A model generated the notes under the pieces. That model did no database searches. It was not told the origin of the DNA and worked only from the letters and a program-made list of their open reading frames with translations. Source: Macrostomum lignano (Eukaryota). From it: 64,000 bases of DNA. The stretch lies in assembly GCA_002269645.1 (NCBI GenBank), contig NIVC01000103.1:372001-436000 (forward strand). Reading direction: 5' to 3'. The position numbers and the translations under genes are program-made. Below are positions 4,741-36,279 of the stretch, piece by piece; positions within the stretch are counted from its first letter, which is position 1, and every line of letters starts with the position of its first letter.

Positions 4741-4993
4741 TTCTCTCCTTTCTTTTCTTTTCTTAACTCGTTCTCTTTTCGTATGGCCCGCAGGCCATCG
4801 AGGTAAAAAAGTTTTTCGACCCATGCTTTGGTAGAAAAGTAATTACACACATAGTTCGTGTAATTATGCGTGTAATATTCATAACGAAGACAGTCACTGA
4901 CCTGCAAATGGGACTTTTTCAAGATTATGCAAGATAATAATGTCAAGATATACTGTAGTTATAATATTAATATATTTATTGACGCGAGTAGAT

Positions 4994-5478: not shown

Positions 5479-12511
<7,033 letters not shown>

Positions 12512-14436: not shown

Positions 14437-16887
14437 CTACTCTACGTCACCTCCGGGTACGTCAACAACGCTCGGCGTCGGAGCGGGGCCCAGCGGATCG
14501 CCACCGCCTCCGCGCTGTTCTGAGCCGCTGCGGGCTGAAACCGGCCTGGCGCGGCTCGAGTGCGGCCGCTGCTGCTGCTGCCCGCTAGTCGACGGTCTCT
14601 GACCGCTGGCGTCGCCGCTGGTGCCGCTGCCACGGCTGGCGGAGCTCTTCGCCCCGGACACTGGCGGCAGCTTTGTCGGCGGCTCGTCGGAGGCTCGAAC
14701 CTCAGTGAAGAATCGATCGATCCGTCCCTTGTAGATGTGGCCGTCCATGCCCTGGATTTCCGTCTCCTCGCGGTTCGGAGGCGCTGCGGCCGCCGCTGCG
14801 CCCCTAGTTGGGCTGTGGTAGTCCTCCTCCGGCACTGCGGCCGTGCGGGTGACCCTCTTGCTGGGATAAGTGAGGGTATGAGACCCACCCGCAGCCCGCG
14901 GAGTGTAGTAGGCATCCAGCATCTCTCCAGCGTTAATGCTCTTGGCGTGCTGCCTGATGGAGTCCAGCTCGAAGGTGGTGTACGGCCGCATCGACTTCGT
15001 GACGCTGAGTGCTGGCTTCTCCGGCAGCGACGGCGCTGGCGGGTGGGCGCCCATCTCCAGCGGCCGGTCGCAGGAGATGCAGTGGAAATGCTGCAGCAGC
15101 TGCCGCCTGAGCCCGGCCGCGTCGTCCTCGTTGATGTCGGCGACCCCGGCGCCGCCGCCGCTCTTGATCTTGGCGGCGAGGGCTTTCAGCCGCTTCTCCA
15201 GCCAGTCCTTCAGCGCGTCCATCTCCAACCGGTCGAGTTTGCCGTCCAGATCGGCGCCGAGCAGCTTCAACAGTCGGCGAAGATCGTCCTCGGTTGCCAT
15301 CAGCTTCTGCAGCAGTTCGTCAATCTGTGAGTTCAAGTTTCCAGTTGTCTCGTCGAACAGGCTGAAGTTGACCTTGGTGTCCAGCTGGATTTTGTCCGCC
15401 TTGGACTCCAACTGCTGGTCAAGGTAGTCCTTGTCGGCTTTCACTTCGTCCAGGTGAGCAGTGATTCGGAACAGCTCTTGCAGCTTCTCTCCGACATCTT
15501 TGCCGCCCTGCGCCAGGGCCTCTAAGACGGTGTTGATTCTCTCGAGCTCCTTCTGCTGGTCGCTGAGCGCCTTTCGGATCCGGTTGAGGGCCTCCACGTC
15601 GCGGTCGCGGCTCTGGCGCATGTTGTCAACCAAGGAGCGAAGATCGTTCAGCTGCTTGAGCAAGTCGTCGGGCAGTTTCAGGTTCTCCAGATCCTTCTTG
15701 TCAGCCTTGTTCGGCATCTCGTGCTCGAGCTTGTCGACGCGAACCTCCAGACTCTCGTGCCGATTGGTGAGCTTGCCGAGGCTCTCGAGCATCTCGCGCA
15801 GCGCCTCGCTCGGCCCGGGGCTCTGAGGCCGCGACATCGGGTCGGTGGACATGTTGACAACAACTCGCTCTGGCGGGTTGGCCATCCGAGCCATGTCCTC
15901 ACGGATGCCGCGCAGCGCCTTCTCCAGCGACTCCCAGGTGACGAAGTCCTTGAACATCTCCTTTGTCGGCAGATTCTGCATGCTGTCGCGGAGTTCGCTG
16001 AGCTGCGACTCGAGCTGGGCCAGCCGCTCCCACACCGACTTCATCGAGGACAGGTCCTTCATCTCCGAGCGCAGGTTCTCGTTTTCTTTGCGCAGGCGGC
16101 CCATCTCCTTCATCAGCTCGTCAACCAGCGACGAGAGCCTGGCAACGCCCTCTTCATTAGCGTCCGTGCGGCGCCTCATCTGCACCATCTGAAACATGTC
16201 CGCGGTGGCTCGGCCGTCCGACTTGCCTTTGCTGCCGAACACCAGGTCAAAGACGTCCTTGCCGCTCGGCAGGCTGTTCAAAGCGTCCAGCTGCGTCTCC
16301 ACGTTGGACAGACGGTCGAGCAGCTGCTCTGAGTTCAGGCCTCCGCCTGAGAATGAGATCAACGTTGAGATCGAGGGAGTTCGTGGAATCGATTTTGCTT
16401 TAGTTTAGGTTTGAGAAACACGAGCTAAAAAGGGATGATTTTGAAAAAACTTGAAATTCCGCAATCACGGAGCTTCAAACAAACGTTGAGCTTCAGAAAC
16501 GGTATTTTGAGCTGCTTGCTCAGGAAAAGTTGCGACATACTTGTAAAGACAAAACATGTGGTATATAAAAGCTGATTTACCTGCACCGCCGCTGCCGAAA
16601 GTGCCGTCGCGCGGTAGGCCGCTGTCGGTGGTCACAACCGACTCGGTGCCGTCGAGATCGCGCCGGCTTTTAGCCGACTTCTGACCGCCGACTTGCACCG
16701 GCTGACCAGCAGCCTCCGATTGTGGCCTCATCAGTCGGTCGGTGCTGACGCTGGGATCGTTCAGCTTCTCCACGATTGCGTGCAAAAGGCCGTGCAGCAG
16801 ATTGAAGTTCACAGCTCCCTGCTCTGGCGAGCCGACCGCCATGTCCACAAGTTTTGACAGATTCACCACCTCAGCCTGTGCTGCCAT
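14437..16887 (-). CDS. QRICH2: QRICH2/C16orf96-family (DUF4795) coiled-coil protein, about 738 aa
   Basis: Two exons, 16887-16581 and 16346-14437, joined in phase 1. The N-terminus LSKLVDMAVGSPEQGAVNFNLLHGLLHAI and the C-terminal LLQHFHCISCDRPL and SMRPYTTFELD match the family signature as recalled. A long coiled coil lies between them. Confidence 0.82.
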
Positions 16888-18992
16888 GGTGACAAATAAA
16901 ACTGTATTTGAAAGTTTTTAACCCTTTTGAATTAGTGTGCTCAGTGAATGGCGTCCTCTGGTTGTAGCTCAGTGAAGAGCATACATAAAAATTCAATTAA
17001 TATGGTGATTGCAGATAACTCCTTAAGCAGTAAAGCTAGGCTATGTAGAAAACAAATATTGTTCTTTTGTGTTCATAGCGCTTATCATTACATGTGCTAC
17101 ATCTAAAAATTGTTTGCAATTGAAACAAATATTTCAATTCTACCATCTAAATCACTTAAAAATCCTCAATCAAACAGCTGTTAAAAAGGTGAAATCAAGC
17201 GGAGTATTTTTAGCAAAATTTTCTGGCTATTCCTATGCGTTAAAAAATTATAAACGAAGTTACTAATAGGTTTACATATTGCTTCTTGGTATTTTAAAAT
17301 AAATTTGAGGTTAGAATATAGATACCTATTTAAACTGATAATATAAAATTCCAAATATAGTGTTAAAGCTCATAAAATATTTTAGAATTAAAGACTGGAC
17401 AAATAAAGGCTCCAACTGCCAATTAGAAAAAATGGTTTACACAGACTATTTTGGGTGCAGTTCAAGTTTCAACAGGGTCGTGTCCAGGTTGGACAAGAGC
17501 TCTAAGGTACGAGGCCTGATCGAGTTGCACCCAATGAACCTAGTCATCCCGCCAGCTCCCATATAAACCCTAATCAGCCATGAGCTAAGCGTCGAATATT
17601 TTCTCTTTTGGGAAAATTTCTCGGATTTTTGCTTTACTATTTTCTTGGGCTTGGGCCCATATGTGCTTTTTGTGCTTGCTTTGCCTTCGGATGTATACAT
17701 GAAGACAAATACTAGCTAATAAAGTACCATATTAAACAATTCCTGTTAATTTTAATATAGACATAACTACAATACTCGAAGTCTGTTAGCTGAATACATA
17801 GTGCAATGGAAAAGCTAAAACGCATTTTATAAATATTTTTATGATAGTTTCAATTTCAAGCACACCAATAAATACGGATTTAGAGAACCAAAATACAAAT
17901 CTAAAATACAAGACGAAAATTTAAGTGATCAAAACTTTTCTAGTACGCTTAAGTGTAGTTCCATTTAGAAAACGTTACTTGTGTTGAATCGTGGCTAGGG
18001 TCTTTTATCACTAAACAATTAAAGACCTTAAAACAAACTTGAATCGTGCAAATGTCATAATAGAGACGGTAAAAATACATTTTTTTACAAAGCATAACTG
18101 CAACTAATGTAGTAAAAACTGTATTCATAAAGTAAAGATACTATTGTTTTTATTTTATTTTAAATATTAAACTTCGGTGAATATACTTTGTTTTAAAGTG
18201 TTAATTTTTTAAGCTGAAATGTGTGGACAATTTCTAAGAATATTAATTTACTGTCAAAGCGGTAGCAACTTAGCAAGCGGTGTAAGCCTTGCCAGTCAGT
18301 GTTTGTATCAACGTTAGAACCTAGATTCTGCGTATGTATAAGTATCTTTTTGTTCCAGCAGAGTGGATTAAATCTGGTACATTTTGAGAATCACTCGCGC
18401 TCGCGCATTTTCGATCCGATCTCCGCAGGGCGGTAGGACCTGCCTGCTGCCTTGCCCTTACCTGATTGGATCGGATCCCGCTCATCGCTTGCTTGCCTAT
18501 TCATGATGATCAACTACAACACGAACAACTACAGCTATACTAGGCCCTAACATCTTCATCATGCTGAAGAACATCATGGTCTTCCTTCCTTTTGTAGGTC
18601 CAAGAAATAATAAACATTGGCTTACTTTTGAAACAATCCCACTGCCACGCCACTGGCACTAGGCCTACAAACATCAACATGCAAAAGAATTCTAAGTTTT
18701 ATGAACAATTAGTCGTACATACAGCATTTTTCTATAATTCAACAAAGCATAATTAACAATCTGTATTCCTTTTCAATTCCACCTATTTGAATGTGGACTA
18801 GGCCCTAAATCATTAAAATTTATTAAATTGATATCTTCAATTTTTACTTGTTTTAAAGAGGCAATAACAAAGCCCTAGGGGCTTACTATCCCAATTTATT
18901 ATAGGTCCTAGTTATTGAAGTGCATTGTAAATGCATTTAATAGGGCCTACTTGTAGCTCATACTCTTACTTTGTTGATTAGGCCCATTCCAT

Positions 18993-22060: not shown

Positions 22061-23090
22061 TTCTCTCTAAGCAACTTGTTGGCACAAAGCTAATCATATT
22101 GCAGCGCAAATATAAAGCAAATAATAAGACATAGCAATCAAACATAAAGCACAGAATTACAAGACATAACAATGGCGTCACAAGCAGGATTGTTTATGTC
22201 TAACATAACATAATGCCTTTCTGTTAATTTCTAGCATATATATGCTACTGGTATAAGTAAATTTGTTTTTTTCTAGTATAAACTAAGAAATATAGTGTGG
22301 GGGACTATAGTGTAGCATATGATATAACAGATTTAAGAGTATGGCCTATTTCAGAAAACTAGGAATATAAACATATCTACACATCTTTATACATAGGTTA
22401 TGTGACTAAATATAAGGATTTGGGAATTTCTTTTTTTAAGGCAGTCAGATAAGATTTAAAGGTCATATATACACAAACCCCCTAATTTACACTGGCCATA
22501 TGACTTACTTTTTGACCAAAAATGTGACTTACGTATAAAAAACCCTAAAACAAAAACTAATGCAATTTTGGATAAATGGTAAGAGTAACTATGGCTATCC
22601 TTTTAAGCCTAAATACCTTATCATCTAATTAGTACTATATGTATATTCTTTTGGGTGGGCATTTTTCAAACTTACACTTGGTAAATTATAAATTATTTAT
22701 ATTTATAAATTATGGTAGCCAGATTGGCCAGGTCAGATAGCAGTTTTGCATGTATATAAAAGGTAAATAAATAGTGAGCCTATACCTAAACTATACCTAC
22801 TTTTTATTTTTGGGTGCAATTTCAAAATTCAATATGCATATATATACTCTATGGATAATATATAATCTATGCACTAAAAACCCAGAATTTAGAGCTTGTA
22901 ATAAAAGTGACTTATTCATATATAGACAGCTTCAAGAATTTAATGGCCTATAGTAACACTTATATAAATTAGTATAACTTAAAATTCTCTTTACATTTAT
23001 TAGATATTATCTATAAATTATACATGAATTCTGATTATATTTTAATTATATAAAAAATTATTTTATAAGTTAAAACTTCGTTCATTCCAG

Positions 23091-26000
23091 CATCCATCAT
23101 CTCATTTTTCTCGATCGGCTCTGCCTTCAGCTGCCACCCTTTGGGGTGGCGCACCCAGGCCACCACTGCTGCCAACTCCATTTCGCCCTCCCAGTGCAGC
23201 TGGCGGCTTCCCTGGCATGCAGAGCAGCTTTGCTCCATCCACATTCCTTGGCGGCGGCTTTGGTCGACCGCATTTTGCTGCAGGTAACTCAGGGGTTTTC
23301 TTTTACAACTTGCTCACTCAGACCCCTGAGCTGTCCGCCAGCCTCCCAGATCCTCAGTTGCTGGGCCAGCCTCCCAGCTCCTCAGTTGCTGGGCCAGCCT
23401 CCCAGCTCCTCAGTTGCTGGGCCAGCCTCCCAGATCCTCAGTTGCTAGGCCAGCCAACAATATCCTCAGTTGCTGGGCCAGCCAACAATATCCTCAGTTG
23501 CTGGGCCAGCCTCCCAGATCCTCAGTTGCTGTGCCAGCGTCTCAGATCCTCAGTTGCTGTGCCAGCCTCCCAGATCCTCAGTTGCTGGGCCAGCCTCCCA
23601 GATCCTCAGTTGCTGTGCCAGCCTCTCAGATCCTCAGTTGCTGGGTCAGCCTCTCAGATCCTCAGTTGCTGGACCAGCCTCCCAGATCGTCAGCTGCTGG
23701 GCCAGCTTCCTAGATCCTCAGTTGCTGGGCCAGCCTCCCAGATCCTCAGTTGCTGGGCCAGCCTCCCAGATCCCCAGTTGCTGAGCCAGCCTCCCAGATC
23801 CTCAGTTGCTGAGCCACCACTGCTTTGTATTTCCCAATCAATTAAATATTATTGTCTTACTCTTAAAGCAGATTTCGTGAAGAGAATATTGTATTATAAT
23901 AATTATATAGGAACCAGTCACGTGCAGCATCACCAACAGCAGCAGCATCAGCATCATCAGCAGCACCGCTTCAACGACAGAGGGCGTGGCTTCGCCTTCT
24001 CTCGCGGTCGCGGCCGAGGCAGAGGCAGAGGCGGCGGCGGAGATCGAGGAGGCGCCGCAGAGGTGTCGCCCTGGCACTGCTGCAACCGCGACTTCCGCAG
24101 CGAGTTGGAGCTGGAGCGGCACAAATCGGAGCACGCCAAGTGCTGGGTGGCCGACTGCCCGTTCACAGCCAGCCAGGAGCTGATCGAGCTGCACTTTGTG
24201 CACCAGCACCGCACCGGCTTGGCCAATCAGATTTTGCAGGCCGATTGCGACACTTGGCGTCGGGAAAGGCGCAAAAATTTCCCAACAGCCGAACGGGCCG
24301 AAGCGAAACGACGCGAGGCGGCGGCGCGAGAGGCGCGCGGCGAAGTTGTGCAGCAGCGGCAGTTTGGCCGGATGGGCGGCGGTGGAGGCGGCAGAGGCGG
24401 CGGCGGCTGGCGAGGACGCGGGGCCGGCGGAGGTCGAGGCGGTGGCCGCGGCTGGGGTCAGCATCGAGGCGGCAGAGGTTCGCACCAGCAGGTACCGGCA
24501 CTCTTAATAAGTCTTGCTGCCATCTTCCCAGATCCTCATACTGAGCCACTATCTTCCCAGATCCTCATACTGAGCCACTATCTTCCCAGATCCTCATACT
24601 GAGCCACTATCTTCCCAGATCCTCATACTGAGCCACTATCTTCCCAGATCCTCATACTGAGCCACTATCTTCCCAGATCCTCATACTGAGCCACTATCTT
24701 CCCAGATCCTCATACTGAGCCACTATCTTCCCAGATCCTCATACTGAGCCACTATCTTCCCAGATCCTCATACTGAGCCACTATCTTCCCAGATCCTCAT
24801 ACTGAGCCACCATCTTCCCAGATCCTCATACTGAGCCACCATCTTCCCAGATCCTCATACTGAGCCACCATCTTCCCAGATCCTCATACTGAGCCACCAT
24901 CTTCCCAGATCCTCATACTGAGCCACCATCTTCCCAGATCCTCATACTGAGCCACCATCTTCCCAGATCCTCATACTGAGCCACCATCTTCCCAGATCCT
25001 CATACTGAGCCACCATCTTCCCAGATCCTCATACTGAGCCACCATCTTCCCAGATCCTCATACTGAGCCACCATCTTCCCAGATCCTCATACTGAGCCAC
25101 CATCTTCCCAGATCCTCATACTGAGCCACCATCTTCCCAGATCCTCATACTGAGCCACCATCTTCCCAGATCCTCATACTGAGCCACCATCTTCCCAGAT
25201 CCTCATACTGAGCCACCATCTTCCCAGATCCTCATACTCAGCCACCATCTTCCCAGATCCTCAGCTCGGCCAATGCAGCCGAGTTTGGCGCCGCCGACAG
25301 CGAAGCCGATGCCCGACATCGCGACCCTCTGTCGGCCTGTCTGGTCGAGTCCGAATCTGACGATGACGACGATGACGACGCTGGCACCCGGAATGCTGGC
25401 GTCGAAAACCCCGAAGGCAAGACTGAGATGCTCATCGGCGATGTCGAAGATCCCGAAGCCGACGCTCCGCCAACTGTGCTAAGCAGTCTGGCTGCCAACT
25501 ATGCTTCATCAGCTTCCATGTCTGCCGACTCCACTGAGGCCGATCTGGACGACTCGATGGAGAAAGAGAAGGACAAACAGCGGCCAGATGGCGGCCCAGT
25601 CGAATCATTGAGCTGCGGTCAGTCGCGACGGCACGTTGATGCCGCGCTGATGCTTCATCGTCGTCGGGAGCGGCTGATGCAGGTGCGTCTGCGTCTCGTG
25701 TACAGTGCCCCTCCTGCGCCTGTGACTTTCATCTGCTTGCCGGGATTTTCGCGACTCACTCCCACTTTTCCCCTCTATCCTCCCTTACCCCCTCTACCCC
25801 CCTCATTCCCCCGTTCCCCCTCTACCCCTCCTCTACCCCCCTCTACCCCTCCTCTACCCCTCCTCTATCCGCCTCTACCCCTCCTCTATCCCCCTCTACC
25901 CCTCTATCCCTCTTTTACCCCCCTCTATCCCCCTCAATCCCTCTTTTACTCCCCTCTATCCCCCTCAATCCCTCTTTTACCCCCCCTCTATCCCCCTCAA

Positions 26001-26743
26001 TCCTTCTTTTACCCCCCCTCTATCCCCCTCTATCCCCCCTCTACCCCTCTATCTTCCTTTAATCCTTCCTAACCCTCTCTTTCCCCCCTATCCCAATGTA
26101 TCCTCCTTTATTCCTCTCTACCCCTCTCCATCCCCGTCTACAACCCCTCTTTCCTCTATTCTTTATCCCTCTATCCTCCTGTCTCTATCCCCTCTCTTTT
26201 CCTCTCTTTCCTCTATCACTCTATCCACTCTTATCCCCCTCTTTCTCCCTCTATTCCCCTCTATCCCCCTCTGTCCCTATCTATCGCCTCTATCCCCATT
26301 TTTTCCTTTATCCCTATCTATCCTCCCATACCCCCTCTATTCCCATAGATGAGGATCTATTTCTTTCTATCCCCCATCCACTTCTAAAAGGAAAAGCATT
26401 TAACAACACGCAGGAGCCAGCAATGCGCCTGAGACGGCCAGCCCTACTAGAGATGCTTCTGTCAAGGCACATTCGCCACGAACGCAATCTGCTGTTTCAG
26501 TGCGTGCGCTACATCTGCTCTACGGATTTCTTGAATAGCGATGCGCCAACTATTGACAAGTCCGCTGCCCCAGCCCACCGCATTGATGTTGAGGCGGCAG
26601 CTGAAACTGATGACGCCAAAGTCGATGATGCAGCCCCAGAATTCGATTGCGATGATGTCGAATGGGAGGCTGCAGATGAGGAAGCTGGTATGGCTACCGA
26701 TGAAGATGGAGATGAAGCTGGAAGTGATGAAGCGTCTAGTTAA
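23091..26743 (+). CDS. NUFIP1: Nuclear FMR1-interacting protein 1 / Rsa1 (box C/D snoRNP assembly factor)
   Basis: Exons 23091-23283 (first in-frame ATG at 23217), 23911-24491, 25257-25682 and 26414-26743. It has C2H2-like CNRDF..ERHKSEH and C..DCPF..HFVHQH motifs, WRRERRKNFPT, an RGG-rich tract, DPLSACL and the C-terminal RRPALLEMLL..IRHERNLLFQCVRYI. AATAAA at 26789. Confidence 0.9.
23328..23815. repeat. Intronic ~28-bp minisatellite (cctcccagatcctcagttgctgggccag)
   Basis: Directly visible in NUFIP1 intron 1. Confidence 0.9.
24522..25264. repeat. Intronic 29-bp near-perfect minisatellite (atcctcatactgagccacYatcttcccag), about 25 units
   Basis: Directly visible. The last unit supplies the phase-0 acceptor at 25256/25257. 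Confidence 0.95.
25765..26345. repeat. Polypyrimidine low-complexity tract (cctctatcccc)
   Basis: NUFIP1 intron 3. Confidence 0.9.
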
Positions 26744-27029
26744 TTTAAAAAGTTAGCAAGTCAAAAAGGATTCCGACTGTCACTTGATAATAAAATCTTG
26801 TTATTATTGTCACAATGCATTTCCCTCTCCATTTCTGCATTAGTGCCGTACAATGTATCGTGAACTTCGTGAAAATTTGTGCCTAAGTCTGTCCTCGCTG
26901 ACTTGCTGGATAAATACAACTGTTCCATTATTTTCAATCTTAGTGAATGGTTGCATTTATGACTAAATTGTGTCCTTACTGTTAACTATTTTTTTCTGTC
27001 ATTCCATCACTTGGCTCACAGTTTAACCC

Positions 27030-27718
27030 CCCACTGACATGTACGCTCCCTTACCCCTAAACCCCACTGCCAATGTACACTCCCTGAGCCCTAAACCCCA
27101 CTGCCAATGTACACTCCCTGAGCCCTAAACCACACTGCAAATGTACACTCCCTGAGCCCTAAACCACACTGCAAATGTACACTCCCTGAGCCCTAAACCA
27201 CACTGCAAATGTACACTCCCTGAGCCCTAAACCCCACTGCAAATGTACACTCCCTGACCCCTTAACCCCACTGCCAATTTACGCTCCCTGAACCCCACTG
27301 CCAATGTACACTCCCTGACCCGAACCCTCACTGCGAATGTATACACTCTCTGACCCCTGAACTCCACTGCAGATGTACACTCCCTGAACTCTGACCCCAT
27401 TGCCAATGTACACTCCCTGAACTCTGACCCCACTGCCAATGTACACTCCCTGACCTCTGAACCCACTGCTAATGTGCACTCCCTGACCCCTGAACCCCCA
27501 CTACCAATGTACACTCCCTGACCCCTGAACCCCACTGCAAATGTACACTCCCTGACCCGAACCCTCACTGCCAATGTATACACTCTCTGACCCCTGAACT
27601 CCACTGCAGATGTACACTCCCTGAACTCTGACCCCACTGCCAATGTACACTCCCTGAACTCTGACCCCACTGCCAATGTACACTCCCTGACCCCTGAACC
27701 CCACTGCCAATGTACACC
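27030..27718. repeat. ~35-bp minisatellite (ccactgccaatgtacactccctga..ccc) between NUFIP1 and CLPB
   Basis: Directly visible. Confidence 0.92.
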
Positions 27719-27754
27719 CTGATATTCAATAGAGATGTACTTATAAACTTCCAG

Positions 27755-30700
27755 ATTATTGGCACCGCAAGATCTGCTGCTACCCAGTCTCAGCTACTGG
27801 TGTCGGCCACCTGGTGCCGACGTCTCAGCCGGCTGCTGACTGCTCAACTGCCGACTCAAACCGAAGCTAGTCAGTACAGTCGGGATCATCGTCGACACCG
27901 TTATGAGCATCGTCAGCAGCCTCGCCGGCCGGTGGTCGCGATGGCCGTCCTGCTCGGCGGAGCAGCCGGAAGCGCCGTGGCCAGAGCCGATGATGGCGAC
28001 AAAAATTCGCAAGCCGATGAGGACGAGCTGCTCAGATTCTGTCGGCTTGGCGACGCCAACAAAGTGCAGCAGTTGATTCTGCGGCATCGGATGGTGCGCC
28101 GAAACCATCTGGGCTCGCGGGATAGAGATGGGGATCCTGAGAGGCGATTGGCCAATGTGAGGCACAGGCTGGGCTGGACTGCCCTGGCTGCAGCTGTTGT
28201 CAACGGGCACGAGGAAGTTGCCAGGTAATTATTTGATGTCCGAACCTCTAATCCATATGTCCGAATCCTTAATCTACCTGTCCGAATCTCTAACCCACTG
28301 TCTGAATCTCTAATCCACTTGTCCGAATCTCTAATCCATCTGTCCGAATCCTTAAACCACCCGTCTCTACTAATTCATCTGTCCGAATCTCTAATCCACC
28401 TGTCCGAATCTCTAATCCATCTATCTGAATCTCTAATTAATCTGTCCAAATCTCTCATCCACCTGTCCGAATCTCTAATCCACCTGTCCGAATCTCTATT
28501 TCACCTGTCCAAATCTCTAATCCACCTGTCCGAATCTCTAATCCACCTTTCCGATTCTCTAATCCATCTGTCCGAATCTCTAATTCACCTGTCCTAATCC
28601 TTAATTCACCTGTCCGAATCTCTAATTCACCTGTCCGAATCTCTAATTCACCTGTCCGAATCTCTAATCCACCTGTCCGAATCTCTAATTAACCTGTCCG
28701 AATCTCTGATCAATCTTTCCGAATCTAATCCACCTGTCCGAATCTCTAATCCATCTATCCGAATCTAATCCACCTGACCGAATCTCTAATCCATCTATCC
28801 GAATCTAATCCACCTGACCGAATCTCTAATCCATCTATCCTAATCTAATCCACCTGTCCGATTATTCTCCAAACCATCTGTCCCGTCACTGGTTGCCAGG
28901 CTGTTGCTAAGCATGGGTGCGGATCCCAATGCGTCGGACACATTCTCCGGCGCCTTCTCGGTGGCCGCCCGGCTGGGCGCTAACTCGGCCGAAGTGAGCA
29001 GCCAGCGGAGCGCAGAGTTCAGCGAGCGGCTCAATCACAGCGCCACTTTTGTTGGCTGCACTCCGCTGCACTATGCCGCCCTGATTGACTCGGTTGCTAT
29101 GGTGCAGCTGCTGCTGGAGGCTAAAGCCGATCCGACTATGTAAGGCTTTATTGGCAGTATAAATTGCTATGCATGTTTCATTGCCTGTACAAAATTGTCC
29201 TGATACCAATCGATGTTTATTCCAATTTATTCCCTATTTGCTCTGACCCAAAATCCATATTTATCCCCTATTTTAACTGATCCCCAACCCATATTTTTCT
29301 CCTATTTGATTCCCAATCCATAGTTATTCTCTATTTGCTCGATCCTCAATCCATATTTATCCCCTATTTGCTCAGATCCCCAATCCATATCCCCTATTTG
29401 CTCGATCCTCAATCCATATTTATCCCCTAATTGCTCAGATCCTCAACCGATATTTATCCTTTAATTGCTAAAATTCCCAATCCATATTTATCCCCTATTT
29501 GCTCAGATCCTTGATCCATATTTATCCCCTATTTGCTCAGATCCCCAATCCATATTATCCCCTATTTGCTCAGATCCTCAATCCATATTTATTCCCTAAT
29601 TGCTCAGATCCTCAACCGATATTTATCCTTTATTTGCTCAAATTCCTAATCCATATTTATCCCCTATTTGCTCAGATCCTCAATCCATATTTATCCCCTA
29701 TTTGCTCATTGCTCAGATCCCCAATCCATATTATCCCCTATTTGCTCAGATCCTCAATCCATATTTATCCCCTATTTGCTCAGATCCCCAATCCATATTA
29801 TCCCCTATTTGCTCAGATCCTCAATCCATATTTATTCCCTAATTGCTCAGATCCTCAACCGATATTTATCCTTTATTTGCTCAAATTCCCAATCCATATT
29901 TATCCCCTATTTGCTCAGATCCTCAATCCATATTTATCCCCTATTTGCTCATTGCTCAGATCCCCAATCCATATTATCCCCTATTTGCTCAGATCCTTGA
30001 TCCATATTTATCCCCTATTTGCTCAGATCGTCAATCCATATTTATCCCCTATTTGCTTAGATCCTCAACCGATATTTATCCTTTATTTGCTCAAATTCCC
30101 AATCCATATTTATCCCCTATTTGCTCAGATCCTTGATCCATATTTATCCCCTATTTGCTCAGATCGTCAATCCATATTTATCCCCTATTTGCTCATTGCT
30201 CAGATCCCCAATCCATATTATCCCCTATTTGCTCAGATCCTTGATCCATATTTATCCCCTATTTGCTCAGATCCCCAATCCATATTATCCCCTATTTGCT
30301 CAGATCCTCAATCCATATTTATTCCCTAATTGCTCAGATCCTCAACCGATATTTATCCTTTATTTGCTCAAATTCCCAATCCATATTTATCCCCTATTTG
30401 CTCAGATCCTCAATCCATATTTATCCCCTATTTGCTCATTGCTCAGATCCCCAATCCATATTATCCCCTATTTGCTCAGATCCTTGATCCATATTTATCC
30501 CCTATTTGCTCAGATCCTTGATCCATATTTATCCCCTATTTGCTCAGATCCTCAATCCATATTTATCCCCTATTTGCTCATTGCTCAGATCCCCAATCCA
30601 TATTATCCCCTATTTGCTCAGATCGTCAATCCATATTTATCCCCTATTTGCTCAGATCCTTGATCCATATTTATCCCCTATTTGCTCAGATCCTTGATCC

Positions 30701-33700
30701 ATATTTATCCCCTATTTGCTCAGATCCTCAATCCATATTTATCCCCTATTTGCTCAGATCCTCAATCCATATTTATTCCCTAAGTGCTCAGATCCTCAAC
30801 CGATATTTATCCTTTATTTGCTCAAATTCCTAATCCATATTTATCCCCTATTTGCTCAGATCCTCAATCCATATTTATCCCCTATTTGCTCATTGCTCAG
30901 ATCCCCAATCCATATTATCCCCTATTTGCTCAGATCCTCAATCCATATTTATCCCCTAATTGCTTAGATCCTCAACCGATATTTATCCTTTATTTGCTCA
31001 AATTCCCAATCCATATTTATCCCCTATTTGCTCAGATCCTTGATCCATATTTATCCCCTATTTGCTCAGATCGTCAATCCATATTATCCCCTATTTGCTC
31101 AGATCCCCAATCCATATTATCCCCTATTTGCTCAGATCCTCAATCCATATTTATCCCCTAATTGCTCAGATCCTCAACCGATATTTATCCTTTATTTGCT
31201 CAAATTCCCAATCCATATTTATCCCCTATTTGCTCAGATCCTCGATCCATATTTATCCCCAATTTGCTCAGATCCCCAATCCATATTTATCCCCTATTTG
31301 CTCAGATCCTCAATCCATATCTATCCCCAATTTGCTCAGATCCTCAATCCATATTTATCCCCTATTTGCTCAGATCCTCAATCCATATTTATCCCCTATT
31401 TGCTCAGATCCTCAATCCATATCTATCCCCAATTTGCTCAGATCCTCAATCCATATCTATCCCCAATTTGCTCAGATCCTCAATCCATATTTATCCCCTA
31501 TTTAATCAGATCCCCAATCCATATATACCCTCATTTTCACTCAAATCCCCAATCGAAATTTATCCCTCTCTCCCATCCAGCCGGAACTCTGACGGCCACC
31601 GGCCATCAGTGTACGCTCCCGAGGCAAGCCAAGTCCGCCGGCTGCTGCAGTCGGCCGAACTCGAAGCCGACCGTCGGGCACGTCGCCAGTTCCCGCTTGA
31701 GCAGCGGCTGCGCCAGTCGCTAGTCGGCCAGGAGGCCGCCATTCGATGCGTCGCCGCGGCTGTCCGTCGCAAAGAGAACGGCTGGGGCGACGCTGACCAC
31801 CCGCTGGTGTTCCTGTTTCTGGGCAGCTCCGGCGTGGGCAAGACTGAGCTGGCTAAACAGGTAGGTTTGGGGGGTTTCAGGTAGGTTTGGGGTAGTTGTC
31901 AGGTAGGTTTTCGGGGAGTTGTCAGGTAGGTTTTGGGGGATTTCAGGTAGGTCTTTGGGAGTTTTTAACGTAGGTTTGTAGGGACTTTCAGGTAGGTTTT
32001 TAGTGATTTTCAAGTAGGTTTTTGGGGGATTTTCAGGTGGTAGGTTTTTTGGGGATTTTCCCTAATGTTCAGGGTATGCCTAGAGGATTTTCATTTCAGG
32101 TAGATTTTAGAGGACATAAGAACTCTCAGTTAGGTGTGCTGATTTACCAAGCTTTGAGATTGTGCGAGCGTAAATCACAATGCGCCTCGCAGGTATCGCT
32201 CTACCTAAACCGAGACAGCCAGCAGGCGCAGCAGCAGCAGGGTCAGAATCTGTCACAGCGGCAATCGCCTCTCCAAAAGCAGCAAAAATCCGGCAATAAT
32301 TCGTACGGTTTCGTCCGCCTTGACATGTCCGAATACGCCGAGAAGCACGAAGCCGCCAAGTTGATCGGCGCTCCGCCTGGCTACGTTGGCTACGAGAGCG
32401 GCGGCCAGCTGACACAGGTGAGGCAGGGCGGGAGGATGCTGGGCGAGGGATGGCAGAGGAAAATTGAACAGCAACTCGGGCTTTCAAGATTTTTCAGGGG
32501 TAAGAGAATTATAGAGATTAGGAGAGAGGGGATGGAGGAGAGGAGAGAGGGGATGGAGGAGAGGAGAGAGGGGATGGAGGAGAGGGAAGAGGGGATGGAG
32601 GAGAGGAGAGAGGGGATGGAGGAGAGGAGAGAGGGGATGGAGGAGAGGGAAGAGGGGATGGAGGAGAGGAGAGAGGGGATGGAGGAGAGGAGAGAGGGGA
32701 TGGAGGAGAGGGAAGAGGGGATGGAGGAGAGGGAAGAGGGGATGGAGGAGAGGGAAGAGGGGATGGAGGAGAGGAGAGAGGGGATGGAGGAGAGGGAAGA
32801 GGGGATGGAGGAGAGGAGAGAGGGGATGGAGGAGAGGGAAGAGGGGATGGAGGAGAGGAGAGAGGGGATGGAGGAGAGGGAAGAGGGGATGGAGGAGAGG
32901 AGAGAGGGGATGGAGGAGAGGGGAGAGGGGATGGAGGAGAGGGGAGAGGGGATGGAGGAGAGGGGAGAAGAGATGGAGGAGAGGGAAGAGGGGATGGAGG
33001 AGAGGAGAGAGGGGATGGAGGAGAGGGGAGAGGGGATAGAGAAGAGAAGAGAGGGGATAGAGGAGAGGGGAGAGGGGATAGAGGAGAGGGGATAGAGAAG
33101 AGGGGAGAGGGGATAGAGGAGAGGGGAGAGTTGATGGAGGAGAGGGGATAGAGAAGAAGAGGGGAGAGGGGATGGAGGAGAGGGGATAGAGGAGAGGGGA
33201 GAGGGGATGGAGGAGAGGGGATAGAGGAGAGGGGAGAGGGGATGGAGGAGTGGGGAGAGGGGATGGAGGAGAGGAGAGAGGGGGTGGAGGACAGAAGAGA
33301 GGGGGTGGAGGACAGAAGAGAGGGGGTGGAGGAGAGGGGAGAGGGGATGGAGGAGAGGAGAGAGGGGATGGAGGAGAGGGGAGAGGGGATGGAGGAGAGG
33401 GGATAGAGAAGAGGGGAGAGGGGATAGAGGAGAGGGGAGAGTTGATGGAGGAGAGGGGATAGAGAAGAAGAGGGGAGAGGGGATGGAGGAGAGGGGAGAG
33501 GGGATGAAGGAGAGGGGAGAGGGGATGGAGGAGAGGAGAGAGGGGATAGAGGAGAGGGGATAGAGAAGAGGGGATAGAGGAGAGGGGAGAGGGCATATCG
33601 TCTCTCTACTCTCAAAAAGCTAAATATTGGCAGAAGGGTTGGGCCACAACCTCATAAACCACAGCTGACGGCAATTCTGCCCATCCCACTGACTCTTAAG

Positions 33701-34803
33701 CACATAGAAGCGGTCCCCCTTTTGGGTAATTTTCGCGCTACATCACCCTGAATCCCCCAGGCACTGCAGCGCTGCCCGTCGGCCATAGTCCTGCTAGACG
33801 AGGTGGACAAGGCCCATCCGGACGTGCTCAGCACGCTGCTCCAATTGTTCGACGAGGGTCGCCTAACCGATGGCCAGGGTCGCACCGTCAGCTGTAAGGA
33901 TGCTGTGTTCATCATGACATCGAATTTGGCGTCGGATCAAATTGCCGAGTACGGGCAGCGCCTGAGGCAGGCCGAGGCGGCCGGGGGCGCGGGCCGTAGC
34001 GGCGGTGCGGGCAGCAGGGAGCTGCAAGTCGAGGCCGAGGTGATTTTGCTGTTTCAATACCTGTTGGATCCCCTGTTGTATTGTATACGAATCACCGGGT
34101 TTTTATTCACCGCTTGGATCCCTGTTATTTCTTCAGTAAAAAACACCGGTTAGATAACCTGTTATTAGCCCTGTCAATAACACCGGTTAGATCACCTGTT
34201 ATTAGCCCTGTCAATAACACCGGTTAGATCACCTGTTATTAGCCCTGTCAATAACACCGGTTAGATCACCTGTTACCAGCAAAATCTCCCAACTCCCGCA
34301 CCTGGCAGGTGAGCCGCGACTTCAAGGACACTGTAGTCCGCCCAATCCTCAAGCGTCACTTCCGCCGCGACGAGTTCCTTGGCCGAATCAATGAGATCGT
34401 CTACTTCCTGCCGTTCAACTCTGCCGAGCTGGCTCAGCTGGTCAACCGGCAGCTCAACAAGTGGGCAGCTGTGGCCAAGGACCGCCACGGCATCGATCTG
34501 GTCTGGAGCGGCAAAGCAGTCGAGGCGCTGTCAGACGGGTATGACTATCACTACGGCGCCAGGTCCATCAAATACGAAGTTGACCGGCAGGTGGTGAGTC
34601 AGCTGGCATTGGCTGACGAATTCGGCCTTTTGAGCTCTGGCGATCGGGTGGAGCTCATCGTGTCCGACTCGGCCAAGCAGCGCAAAGTTGATTTGAAAAT
34701 CTGCCGCGGTCAGCTGGGTTCTAAGGATTATTCTACTGTCATTGTTAGGGAGAAGCTGGCTGCGGATTCGGCAGGCGCTTCATCAGCAGCGGCTTCTGAG
34801 TAG
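27755..34803 (+). CDS. CLPB: Mitochondrial AAA+ disaggregase CLPB/Skd3 (ankyrin repeats + AAA+ domain); start codon not located
   Basis: Exons 27755-28224, 28900-29139, 31581-31860, 32193-32417, 33761-34039 and 34309-34803, all phase-compatible. Motifs: [25 protein letters not shown], Walker A GSSGVGKT, pore loop GAPPGYVG, Walker [21 protein letters not shown] and YGARSIK. AATAAA near 34909. Confidence 0.95.
28240..28862. repeat. Intronic 21-bp minisatellite (tgtccgaatctctaatccacc)
   Basis: CLPB intron 1. Confidence 0.92.
29290..31530. repeat. Intronic ~33-bp minisatellite with higher-order blocks (atccatatttatcccctatttgctcagatcctca), ~2.2 kb
   Basis: CLPB intron 2. Confidence 0.95.
31861..32105. 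repeat. Degenerate ~22-bp repeat carrying about nine GTAGGT donor-like motifs
   Basis: Starts at the authentic donor CAG|GTAGGT at 31860/31861 in CLPB intron 3. Confidence 0.8.
32521..33592. repeat. Polypurine 21-bp minisatellite (gaggggatggaggagaggaga)
   Basis: CLPB intron 4. Confidence 0.93.
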
Positions 34804-34997
34804 CTTCTCTTATTCGCGTTATCCAGATCTGAATGCAAAACTGGATTTTTATTTTGTACACCTTTATAATTCACGTACAATGCTGATGCTGTGACGTTGC
34901 GAAATTCAATAAATTTGATTGGACATTATCTAGCTGATTCTCTTATGCACTAAATGCTTCTGTTTTCTTACGGTGATTTGTACTTTCTGTGGGCTTC

Positions 34998-35289
34998 GGA
35001 CGGACAGGCAGGCAGACAGGCAGACAGACAGACAGACAGACAGACAGGCAGGCAGGCAGACAGACAGGCAGGCAGGCAGGCAGGCAGGCAGACAGGCAGA
35101 CAGACAGACAGGCAGACAGACAGGTAGACAGACAGGTAGACAGACAGGTAGACAGACAGACAGGTAGACAGACAGACAGGCAGACAGACAGGTAGACAGA
35201 CAGACAGGTAGACAGACAGACAGATAGACAGACAGACAGACAGACGGACAGACAGATAGACAGACAGATAGACAGACAGACAGACAGAC

Positions 35290-35329
<40 letters not shown>

Positions 35330-35543
35330 ACAGACAGGTAGACAGACAGGCAGACAGACAGACAGGCAGACAGACAGGTAGACAGACAGGTAGACAGACA
35401 GGTAGACAGACAGACAGGTAGACAGACAGACAGGCAGACAGACAGGTAGACAGACAGACAGGTAGACAGACAGACAGATAGACAGACAGACAGACAGACG
35501 GACAGACAGATAGACAGACAGATAGACAGACAGACAGACAGAC

Positions 35544-35579
<36 letters not shown>

Positions 35580-35689
35580 ACAGACAGACAGGTAGACAGA
35601 CAGACAGGTAGACAGACAGACAGGTAGACAGACAGACAGATAGACAGACAGATAGATAGACAGACAGATAGACAGACAGGTAGACAGAC

Positions 35690-35720
<31 letters not shown>

Positions 35721-35850
35721 TAGACAGACAGGTAGACAGACAGGTAGACAGACAGATAGACAGACAGACAGACAGATAGACAGACAGACAGACAGACTGT
35801 CAGACAGACAGACAGACAGACACAGGCAGGCAGGCATGCAGACAGTCAGA
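34998..35850. repeat. (AGAC/AGGC/AGGT)n tetranucleotide microsatellite
   Basis: Lies between the convergent 3' ends of CLPB and the KH-like gene. Confidence 0.97.
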
Positions 35851-36279
35851 CAGGGCAGTACACTGTATATGACAAAGACGTAGAACAAGGACAAAGACTG
35901 CACACTATGAATTATGTACTACAAAGGTAAATAAAATAGCGGTGCTGATTTGCCTCCGAGTTCAGCCGCAGGAAAATGCAAAAAAATGGAAATTATAGTT
36001 TTATTGCTGCAATACTCTGAAACTCAGGTCCGTATATGCTGTACGGTACAGGCGCTAGTTAACTGCGGGCCTTTGCGCACCAAGAAAGCTGTCTTAGCAG
36101 GCATTGCGCTGTCTTTTTGGTGAAATAATAGTGTTTTAGACAGTTGTAAAAATGCAACTATTTGAGAAATTATGGTTTAAAAAAGTGACGGTATGTTCTA
36201 TCTGCGGTGAGCTGATTCTATGAAACTGAAAACAAATATTGGTCTCCAGATGGCAGCCGGTCCAGTTGTGCCTGATAAG
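35834..36279 (-). repeat. Left copy of a ~446-bp inverted duplication (3'UTR of the KH-like gene, includes AATAAA)
   Basis: Its reverse complement matches 45084-45528 apart from a few substitutions and a 1-bp indel in an A run. Confidence 0.92.

Follow-up and report, generated by a model that had tools for sequence, protein, structure and literature searches.

A NUFIP1–CLPB gene pair in the flatworm Macrostomum lignano that is probably resolved, and supplied with its start codons, by a trans-spliced leader

Two neighbouring genes on the plus strand of a Macrostomum lignano contig, NUFIP1 (23091–26743) and the disaggregase gene CLPB (27755–34803), each open at a strong splice acceptor with a coding frame that has no initial Met. 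The DNA analysed here, referred to as the window, comprises 64,000 nucleotides of contig NIVC01000103.1 in assembly GCA_002269645.1 (Mlig_3_7); all coordinates are window positions, to which 372000 is added to obtain the coordinate in the record. A first-pass annotation of this DNA had proposed that the pair forms an operon resolved by spliced-leader (SL) trans-splicing and that the leader donates the start codons, provided that the organism is a flatworm. This assignment holds: the spliced CLPB model, used as a query, retrieved 100%-identical M. lignano proteins, and contig look-up matched window positions 17755–44803 (locus L001) base for base. The species carries recent duplications, with two extra, paralogous copies of the NUFIP1–CLPB locus on NIVC01000411.1 (L002) and NIVC01002210.1 (L003). 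The region is eukaryotic in character, with GC-rich exons separated by minisatellite-packed introns. We put the probability that NUFIP1 and CLPB constitute a two-gene, SL-resolved operon with the SL AUG as start codon at roughly 0.78.

Joining four exons at canonical GT-AG borders yields a NUFIP1 protein of 509 residues. Exon 1 (23091–23283) is entered in phase 0 and is open from its first base, exon 2 (23911–24491) encodes the zinc finger and the NUFIP1 domain PF10453, exon 3 spans 25257–25682, and exon 4 (26414–26743) ends in a TAA stop codon at 26741–26743. The model is letter-identical to GenBank PAA90811.1 (P0164, BOX15_Mlig033978g1), exon 3 included, an entry marked “partial” that lacks an initial Met and whose coding sequence (CDS) runs from 23091. 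The class assignment is based on a C2H2 zinc finger, a PF10453 match of 31.5 bits against a cut-off of 23.3, and a C-terminal LLEMLL..IRHERN motif conserved in orthologue alignments. The first in-frame genomic ATG, which the first-pass annotation did not mention, is codon 43 at 23217. Subtracting the 5′-partial CDS of 1527 nt from the published transcripts of 1760 and 1738 nt leaves a 3′ untranslated region (UTR) of ca. 232 nt (PMC5816591 table). Given the 1760-nt transcript, this UTR would extend from 26744 to near 26975, past an AATAAA at 26789–26794 and ending just behind an ACTAAA at 26962–26967. Intron 1 (23284–23910), at 627 nt or 209 codons, is stop-free in frame despite a 28-nt minisatellite; an open reading frame (ORF) from 23217 to 24602 passes through it, so its retention would preserve the frame.

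The CLPB/SKD3 model, likewise built on canonical GT-AG borders, comprises 662 residues in six exons: exon 1 (27755–28224), exon 2 (28900–29139, ankyrin repeats), exon 3 (31581–31860, Walker A), exon 4 (32193–32417), exon 5 (33761–34039) and exon 6 (34309–34803), the last ending in a TAG stop codon at 34801–34803 with an AATAAA following at 34908–34913. It is letter-identical to GenBank PAA90812.1 (P0162, BOX15_Mlig033978g2), again “partial” and without initial Met, with a CDS from 27755. Pfam matches to AAA_2 (6e-48), Ank and ClpB_D2-small (1.5e-8) mark the protein as a CLPB/SKD3 disaggregase, as does its similarity to the human CLPB structure PDB 7xbk (E = 1.4e-162) and its ca. 52% identity to mammalian homologues. 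The architecture of human CLPB/SKD3 (PDB 7xbk, 7ttr, 7us2) recurs here: ankyrin repeats are followed by a single AAA+ domain of the NBD2 type and a D2-small domain, and an N-terminal extension with a hydrophobic stretch precedes the repeats. In the structure-database alignment, human residue 160 stands opposite M. lignano residue 133. Differences are a Gln-rich insertion in the M. lignano AAA+ domain (residues ca. 335–367) and the human start codon, which is genomic. The extension ahead of the first ankyrin repeat is also shorter, with ca. 90 residues in M. lignano compared to what we take to be ca. 130 in the human protein.

At the N-terminus of CLPB, the first in-frame ATG is codon 63 at 27941, in agreement with the ca. 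62 codons given by the first-pass annotation, and the Arg/Leu/Ser-rich segment that it had described ahead of this ATG is present. These codons 1–62 (27755–27940) form a candidate presequence translatable only from an AUG supplied upstream. Judged by a composition heuristic, the first 37 residues, counted with an SL-encoded Met, include four Arg but lack acidic residues; Ser, Thr, Ala and Leu are abundant among them, and an RRL·S motif lies at residue 23. They are followed by a hydrophobic stretch around Met63, an acidic linker, the ankyrin repeats and the AAA+ domain. A protein begun at Met63 would instead have an acidic N-terminus, with three acidic residues and one basic residue in its first 20. 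We infer from this layout that the M. lignano CLPB N-terminus would drive mitochondrial import.

The acceptors lie where the first-pass annotation had placed them, ttccag·CATCCATCA at 23091 and ttccag·ATTATTGGC at 27755 (dots mark the splice point), and both lead in phase 0 into an open frame. Phase alone is not significant, since phase 0 is a 1-in-3 event for each gene. The M. lignano SL, CGGTCTCTTACTGCGAAGACTCAATTTATTGCATG, is 35 nt long and ends in ATG, as had been presumed from flatworms in general; 30% of M. lignano genes are trans-spliced, at acceptors with the motif [T/C]TNCAG (PMC8629364). Both first-exon acceptors match this motif with TTCCAG, at 23085–23090, the end of the NUFIP1 outron, and at 27749–27754 ahead of CLPB, whereas all eight acceptors inside the two genes depart from it. 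In this small sample, YTNCAG thus seems to discriminate well between trans- and cis-acceptors.

Published annotation points to the same two bases. The GenBank CDS ranges open exactly at 23091 and 27755, rather than at the stop codons that lie 14–16 codons upstream, because the TBONE pipeline, used for the Mlig_3_7 annotation, divided transcripts where SL-containing reads peak (PMC5730564). NUFIP1 is moreover listed under Mlig033978.g1, Mlig033978.g5 and Mlig009805.g1 as {TRANSSPLICED} in a supplementary table of PMC5816591; such supplementary tables of other papers as could be searched gave no match for Mlig033978 or CLPB. Comparison with L002 and L003 revealed no conserved upstream exon for either gene. 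Together with the paralogue letters described below, these data make trans-splicing at both 23091 and 27755 near certain as judged from sequence and annotation. The letters of the SL 3′ end occur 86 times in the window versus 72.5 expected, which is chance level, and a search with the SL 3′ end found no SL RNA gene in the window. The best-looking of these matches were rejected, as they fall into an internal exon of an ankyrin gene or into non-coding sequence.

The spacing of the two genes is consistent with an operon. The first-pass annotation had placed the start of CLPB ca. 950 bp behind the NUFIP1 AATAAA, with most of the gap taken up by a minisatellite; the measured distance to the CLPB acceptor is 961 nt, and 690 of the 1011 nt between the NUFIP1 stop and this acceptor belong to a plus-strand 34-nt minisatellite of 20.6 copies (27028–27717), the last unit of which holds an in-frame ATG at 27710. 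Without the repeat, the spacer measures 321 nt from the NUFIP1 stop or ca. 90 nt from the inferred poly(A) site. Operons in M. lignano have been defined by a spacer below 1 kb once repeats are discounted, the mode being near 100 nt (PMC8629364), and the present pair shows the corresponding features: a common strand, a repeat-adjusted spacer of ca. 90–320 nt and a trans-spliced downstream gene. Gene names carry further information. Transcriptional units in this annotation were clustered at 95% identity under a common prefix, and genes cut from a unit carry.g numbers (PMC5730564). The prefix Mlig033978 is common to NUFIP1 (g1, g5) and CLPB (g2, g3, g4), and by the naming rule at least one assembled unit should therefore span both genes. 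The nearest called genes upstream of NUFIP1 and downstream of CLPB both lie on the minus strand, so the unit would consist of these two genes.

A related species offers a further view of the pair. An exhaustive search of representative sequences with CLPB exon 1 returned the M. lignano cluster and, outside it, a single related protein from Logan, P0167; this protein and the adjoining NUFIP1 fragment are both singletons. P0167 is encoded on the 1567-nt Logan contig SRR28338164_13541 (L004, run SRR28338164), in which the last two NUFIP1 exons, spliced, are directly followed by CLPB exons 1–3, also spliced, and then by intron 3. The related worm appears to encode its own CLPB ATG, at 425, in a reading frame that overlaps the NUFIP1 stop at 439–441, and this overlap on one molecule leaves no room for a promoter. 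The P0167 N-terminus, MRKPFESILEIGSRCLLASAACWQRLRSLSAL..., can be aligned to M. lignano CLPB from residue 15 onward, the numbering being shifted by two residues, and the two N-termini agree in length to within this margin. Since the length and character of the segment are kept, the 62 codons upstream of Met63 are conserved coding sequence. No nucleotide similarity was detectable between the start region of L004 and the M. lignano outron, and the idea that the outron retains a vestige of the L004 ATG region was rejected, as 82% of shuffles reached the alignment score.

The shared unit prefix, the repeat-adjusted spacer and the joined contig of the relative all support the operon proposed by the first-pass annotation, and co-transcription of NUFIP1 and CLPB in M. 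lignano, followed by resolution through the SL, is a likely reading of these data. An alternative is that CLPB is transcribed separately, from a promoter within the 1-kb spacer, and that trans-splicing acts on a monocistronic precursor whose outron is short. Only ca. 40% of SL trans-spliced M. lignano genes have been assigned to operons (PMC8629364), the raw spacer measures 1011 nt, and the two genes carry different transcriptional-unit prefixes in L003, all of which would suit a separate promoter. A common Mlig033978 prefix requires a spanning unit, however, and the non-repeat portion of the spacer, with ca. 90 nt past the inferred poly(A) site and 321 nt past the stop, is short; transcriptional units also tend to break in repeat-rich spacers (PMC8629364), and the relative carries both genes on one molecule. 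On balance we regard a separate CLPB promoter as unlikely.

Where translation starts is a related question. With AUG as the last three letters of the SL and phase 0 at either acceptor, the mRNAs should read ...UUGCAUG·CAU CCA... for NUFIP1 and ...UUGCAUG·AUU AUU... for CLPB. The first-pass prediction that SL addition would yield proteins beginning M-HPSSH and M-IIGTARS agrees with the modelled mRNAs, in which the SL AUG is first, in frame and the only AUG that opens the full reading frame. An alternative is that both genes are trans-spliced but translated from the first genomic AUGs, Met63 of CLPB (27941) and Met43 of NUFIP1 (23217), with the SL AUG skipped. Leaky scanning of this kind is possible because the SL AUG stands in a weak context, uugcAUG with U at −3, compared to gcgAUGg at Met63 and ggcAUGc at Met43. 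In Schistosoma mansoni, the share of trans-spliced transcripts that receive the SL AUG in frame is only 28%, close to what chance would give (PMC9851317). In NUFIP1, the first AUG to follow that of the SL is the in-frame one at codon 43, so starts at either are possible, and UniProt models from an older assembly (P0122, P0166) begin at the latter, with MQSSF.

For CLPB, the evidence against a genomic start is of several kinds. The next AUG behind the SL AUG, at 27903, lies in another frame, and the 57-codon ORF that it opens covers Met63; most ribosomes skipping the SL AUG would therefore be drawn away from Met63. The 62 upstream codons are judged to be coding from P0167, in which they are kept in length and character, and from the human domain layout. 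A Met63 form would be acidic and without a presequence, although homologues are named mitochondrial disaggregase in databases. Support for coding ahead of Met43 in NUFIP1 is weaker and comes from a low-complexity alignment to orthologue N-termini and a 3-nt indel among the paralogues that keeps the frame. These alignments reach residues 26–32, matching orthologue residues 22–31, and the N-terminal length therefore fits only the long form. If translation began at the genomic AUGs, the SL AUG would have to be in frame by a 1-in-3 accident. Initiation at the SL AUG thus appears probable for CLPB and, with less assurance, the better supported choice for NUFIP1; translation of both from genomic AUGs seems improbable.

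The paralogous scaffolds bear what looks like an imprint of SL joining. Around the acceptors, L001 and L002 are 98–99% identical, yet the CA at −3 and −2 of either acceptor is AT in L002: ttcCAG·CAT at the NUFIP1 site of L001 corresponds to ttcATG·CAT in L002 (ATG at 4882–4884), and ttcCAG·ATT at the CLPB site to ttcATG·ATT (9995–9997). TTCATG in L002 carries the last four letters of the SL, and the CLPB site of L003 (9968–9973) reads TGCATG, its last six. At 1–2% divergence, the chance of the CA-to-AT change at both L002 sites is ca. 1e-9. Pilon polishing of Mlig_3_7 employed RNA sequencing (RNA-seq) reads mapped by STAR (PMC5730564), and the likeliest cause is a polishing artefact in which reads bearing the last SL letters, aligned end to end, overwrote the genome at the acceptors.

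Alternatively, these letters could be real genomic alleles, arisen for instance by cDNA conversion, that would provide some copies with their own start codon, with no trans-splicing there. They do stand in the deposited assembly, from which a complete copy of the SL is also reported for the 5′ end of a different protein-coding gene (PMC8629364). Against this, the changes consist of exactly the last letters of the SL at three independent sites, polishing with RNA-seq reads is documented, the coincidence at the two L002 sites is of the order given above, and GenBank keeps the CDSs of L002 and L003 as partial. Real alleles are accordingly a rather remote prospect; L002 and L003 are also not retrocopies, as all introns are retained. 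Whether the letters arose by artefact or by cDNA conversion, mRNA with the SL joined at exactly these bases must have existed. For users of Mlig_3_7, the implication is that polishing seems to have written SL letters over some acceptors, so that spurious genomic ATGs would arise and genuine splice sites would be lost.

Ordinary cis-splicing to an upstream ATG exon (26854–26943 or the ATG at 27710 for CLPB, a far-upstream exon for NUFIP1) has very little probability left: ATG 26854...TTA·GTGAAT would join in phase 0, ATG 27710, which the first-pass annotation did not mention, lies 15 codons upstream of the CLPB acceptor and runs on in frame, without interruption, into exon 1, and parasitic flatworms often share acceptors between cis- and trans-splicing (PMC12582326), but the L003 counterpart of ATG 27710 lies 50 nt from the exon, out of frame and with a TAG after eight codons, the sequence upstream of NUFIP1 has 28% GC with stops in all frames, L003 is unalignable beyond ca. 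−25 of NUFIP1 while being well conserved from the acceptor on, and the RNA-seq-based GenBank models contain no upstream exon. The exon at 26854–26943, which the first-pass annotation had named as a candidate that could overturn its proposal, was rejected, as it lies inside the inferred NUFIP1 3′ UTR and L003 has ATC in place of the ATG as well as a 4-nt insertion.

In the SL-resolved operon that we favour, a single precursor RNA would be transcribed from a promoter upstream of 23091, and the 35-nt SL would be joined at the TTCCAG acceptors, between 23090 and 23091 and between 27754 and 27755. NUFIP1 would be polyadenylated around 26975, ca. 90 non-repeat nucleotides ahead of the CLPB acceptor. 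The SL AUG would start both proteins and, for CLPB, would be required to translate the 62-codon Arg/Ser/Leu-rich presequence, the resulting order of presequence, hydrophobic stretch, ankyrin repeats and AAA+ domain being as expected for a mitochondrial disaggregase. A functional consequence can be offered only tentatively, and we consider it doubtful as a whole: with a presequence translatable only after trans-splicing, a bicistronic precursor or an SL-less transcript would be unable to yield importable CLPB, and the weak context of the SL AUG could govern what share of the protein is imported. If the related worm has its own ATG at this place, the SL may have taken over the CLPB start in M. 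lignano once the two genes had been parted by a spacer with a minisatellite.

Several observations weigh against this reading, in addition to the weak SL AUG context and the NUFIP1 models that begin at Met43. The support for SL joining consists of the published flag, the annotation starts and the paralogue letters, as opposed to SL-containing reads or cDNAs seen directly, and the flag TRANSSPLICED was not found for CLPB among the matches listed in the supplementary table of PMC5816591. GenBank CDSs in L002 and L003 start 3–27 nt downstream of the acceptor, in frame. The contig of the related species contains neither AATAAA nor ATTAAA anywhere and no YTNCAG near the junction, so its structure has to be read with caution. 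For the CLPB presequence, the appraisal is a composition heuristic as opposed to a trained predictor, and L001 and L003 differ in it by four non-synonymous versus two synonymous changes, counted by eye. With non-synonymous exceeding synonymous changes among the three copies, within-species constraint on the presequence appears weak, while the ratio of their rates (dN/dS) across the paralogues is based on too few substitutions to be informative.

The elements of this proposal are known from flatworms. That an SL AUG can initiate translation and that flatworms possess SL-resolved operons, both put forward as established by the first-pass annotation, is published (PMC9851317, PMC8629364). Initiation at the terminal AUG of the Schistosoma SL was shown by Cheng et al. 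2006 (J Biol Chem 281:733), as summarised in PMC9851317 and PMC12582326; in these accounts 28% of trans-spliced schistosome transcripts carry this AUG in frame, and over 40 cDNAs depend on it. ORFs initiated in this way have also been termed “slORFs” (PMC9851317), and for Macrostomum the final ATG of the SL has already been described as a likely start codon (PMC10468722). The present case resembles that of Schistosoma in an SL ending in AUG, a phase-0 acceptor, a recipient exon without AUG at the start of the ORF and a 5′-partial CDS. It differs in that M. lignano is free-living, that a targeting presequence is concerned and that initiation is predicted here from sequence. From the SL-resolved operons of M. 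lignano, which comprise ca. 10,000 assigned genes, the pair does not differ in kind: it shares the common strand, the YTNCAG acceptor of the downstream gene, a repeat-adjusted spacer of ca. 100 nt and a raw spacer inflated by a minisatellite, exactly as described there (Wudarski et al. 2017, PMC5730564; Ustyantsev & Berezikov 2021, PMC8629364).

A literature search did not find the NUFIP1–CLPB pair named in the text of any paper. A parallel for the targeting aspect is reportedly the thioredoxin glutathione reductase of Echinococcus granulosus, for which a 2003 title by Agorio et al. announces alternative trans-spliced mRNAs that encode mitochondrial and cytosolic variants. Going by this title, flatworm trans-splicing would in both cases decide whether a mitochondrial leader peptide is encoded; two mRNA variants serve two locations in Echinococcus, whereas a single acceptor is seen for CLPB, so any dual targeting of CLPB would need leaky scanning. 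The locus is thus a further example of a known flatworm mechanism, with public annotation that already starts both genes at these splice sites, and it adds little new biology, given that the literature on flatworms and on M. lignano already covers initiation at the SL AUG, SL trans-splicing and operons inflated by repeats. Particular to it is that the donated AUG would be needed to encode an organelle presequence, making it a clean and checkable case in which a start codon and an organelle-targeting signal absent from the genome would be brought by the spliced leader. Gene finders and databases truncate proteins of this kind to the first Met found in the genome or else mark them “partial”, which leads to wrong localisation predictions.

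Beyond the two genes, an AT-rich interval of ca. 6 kb extends up to 23090, and both the promoter of the operon and the outron of NUFIP1 are expected within it. Its upstream neighbour is a divergently oriented coiled-coil gene on the minus strand (14437–16887), the L003 counterpart of which matches Pfam DUF4795. Each intron of NUFIP1 and CLPB, as well as the intercistronic spacer, carries a minisatellite with its own distinct unit of 10–37 nt (23337–23816, 24520–25263, 25770–26322, 27028–27717, 28237–28861, 29221–31566, 31858–32060, 32520–33588 and 34142–34275). These repeats are mostly C-rich on the coding strand, the exception being the G-rich repeat of CLPB intron 4. Directly past the CLPB 3′ end lies a (GACA)n/(GGCA)n microsatellite of ca. 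215 copies (34999–35853).

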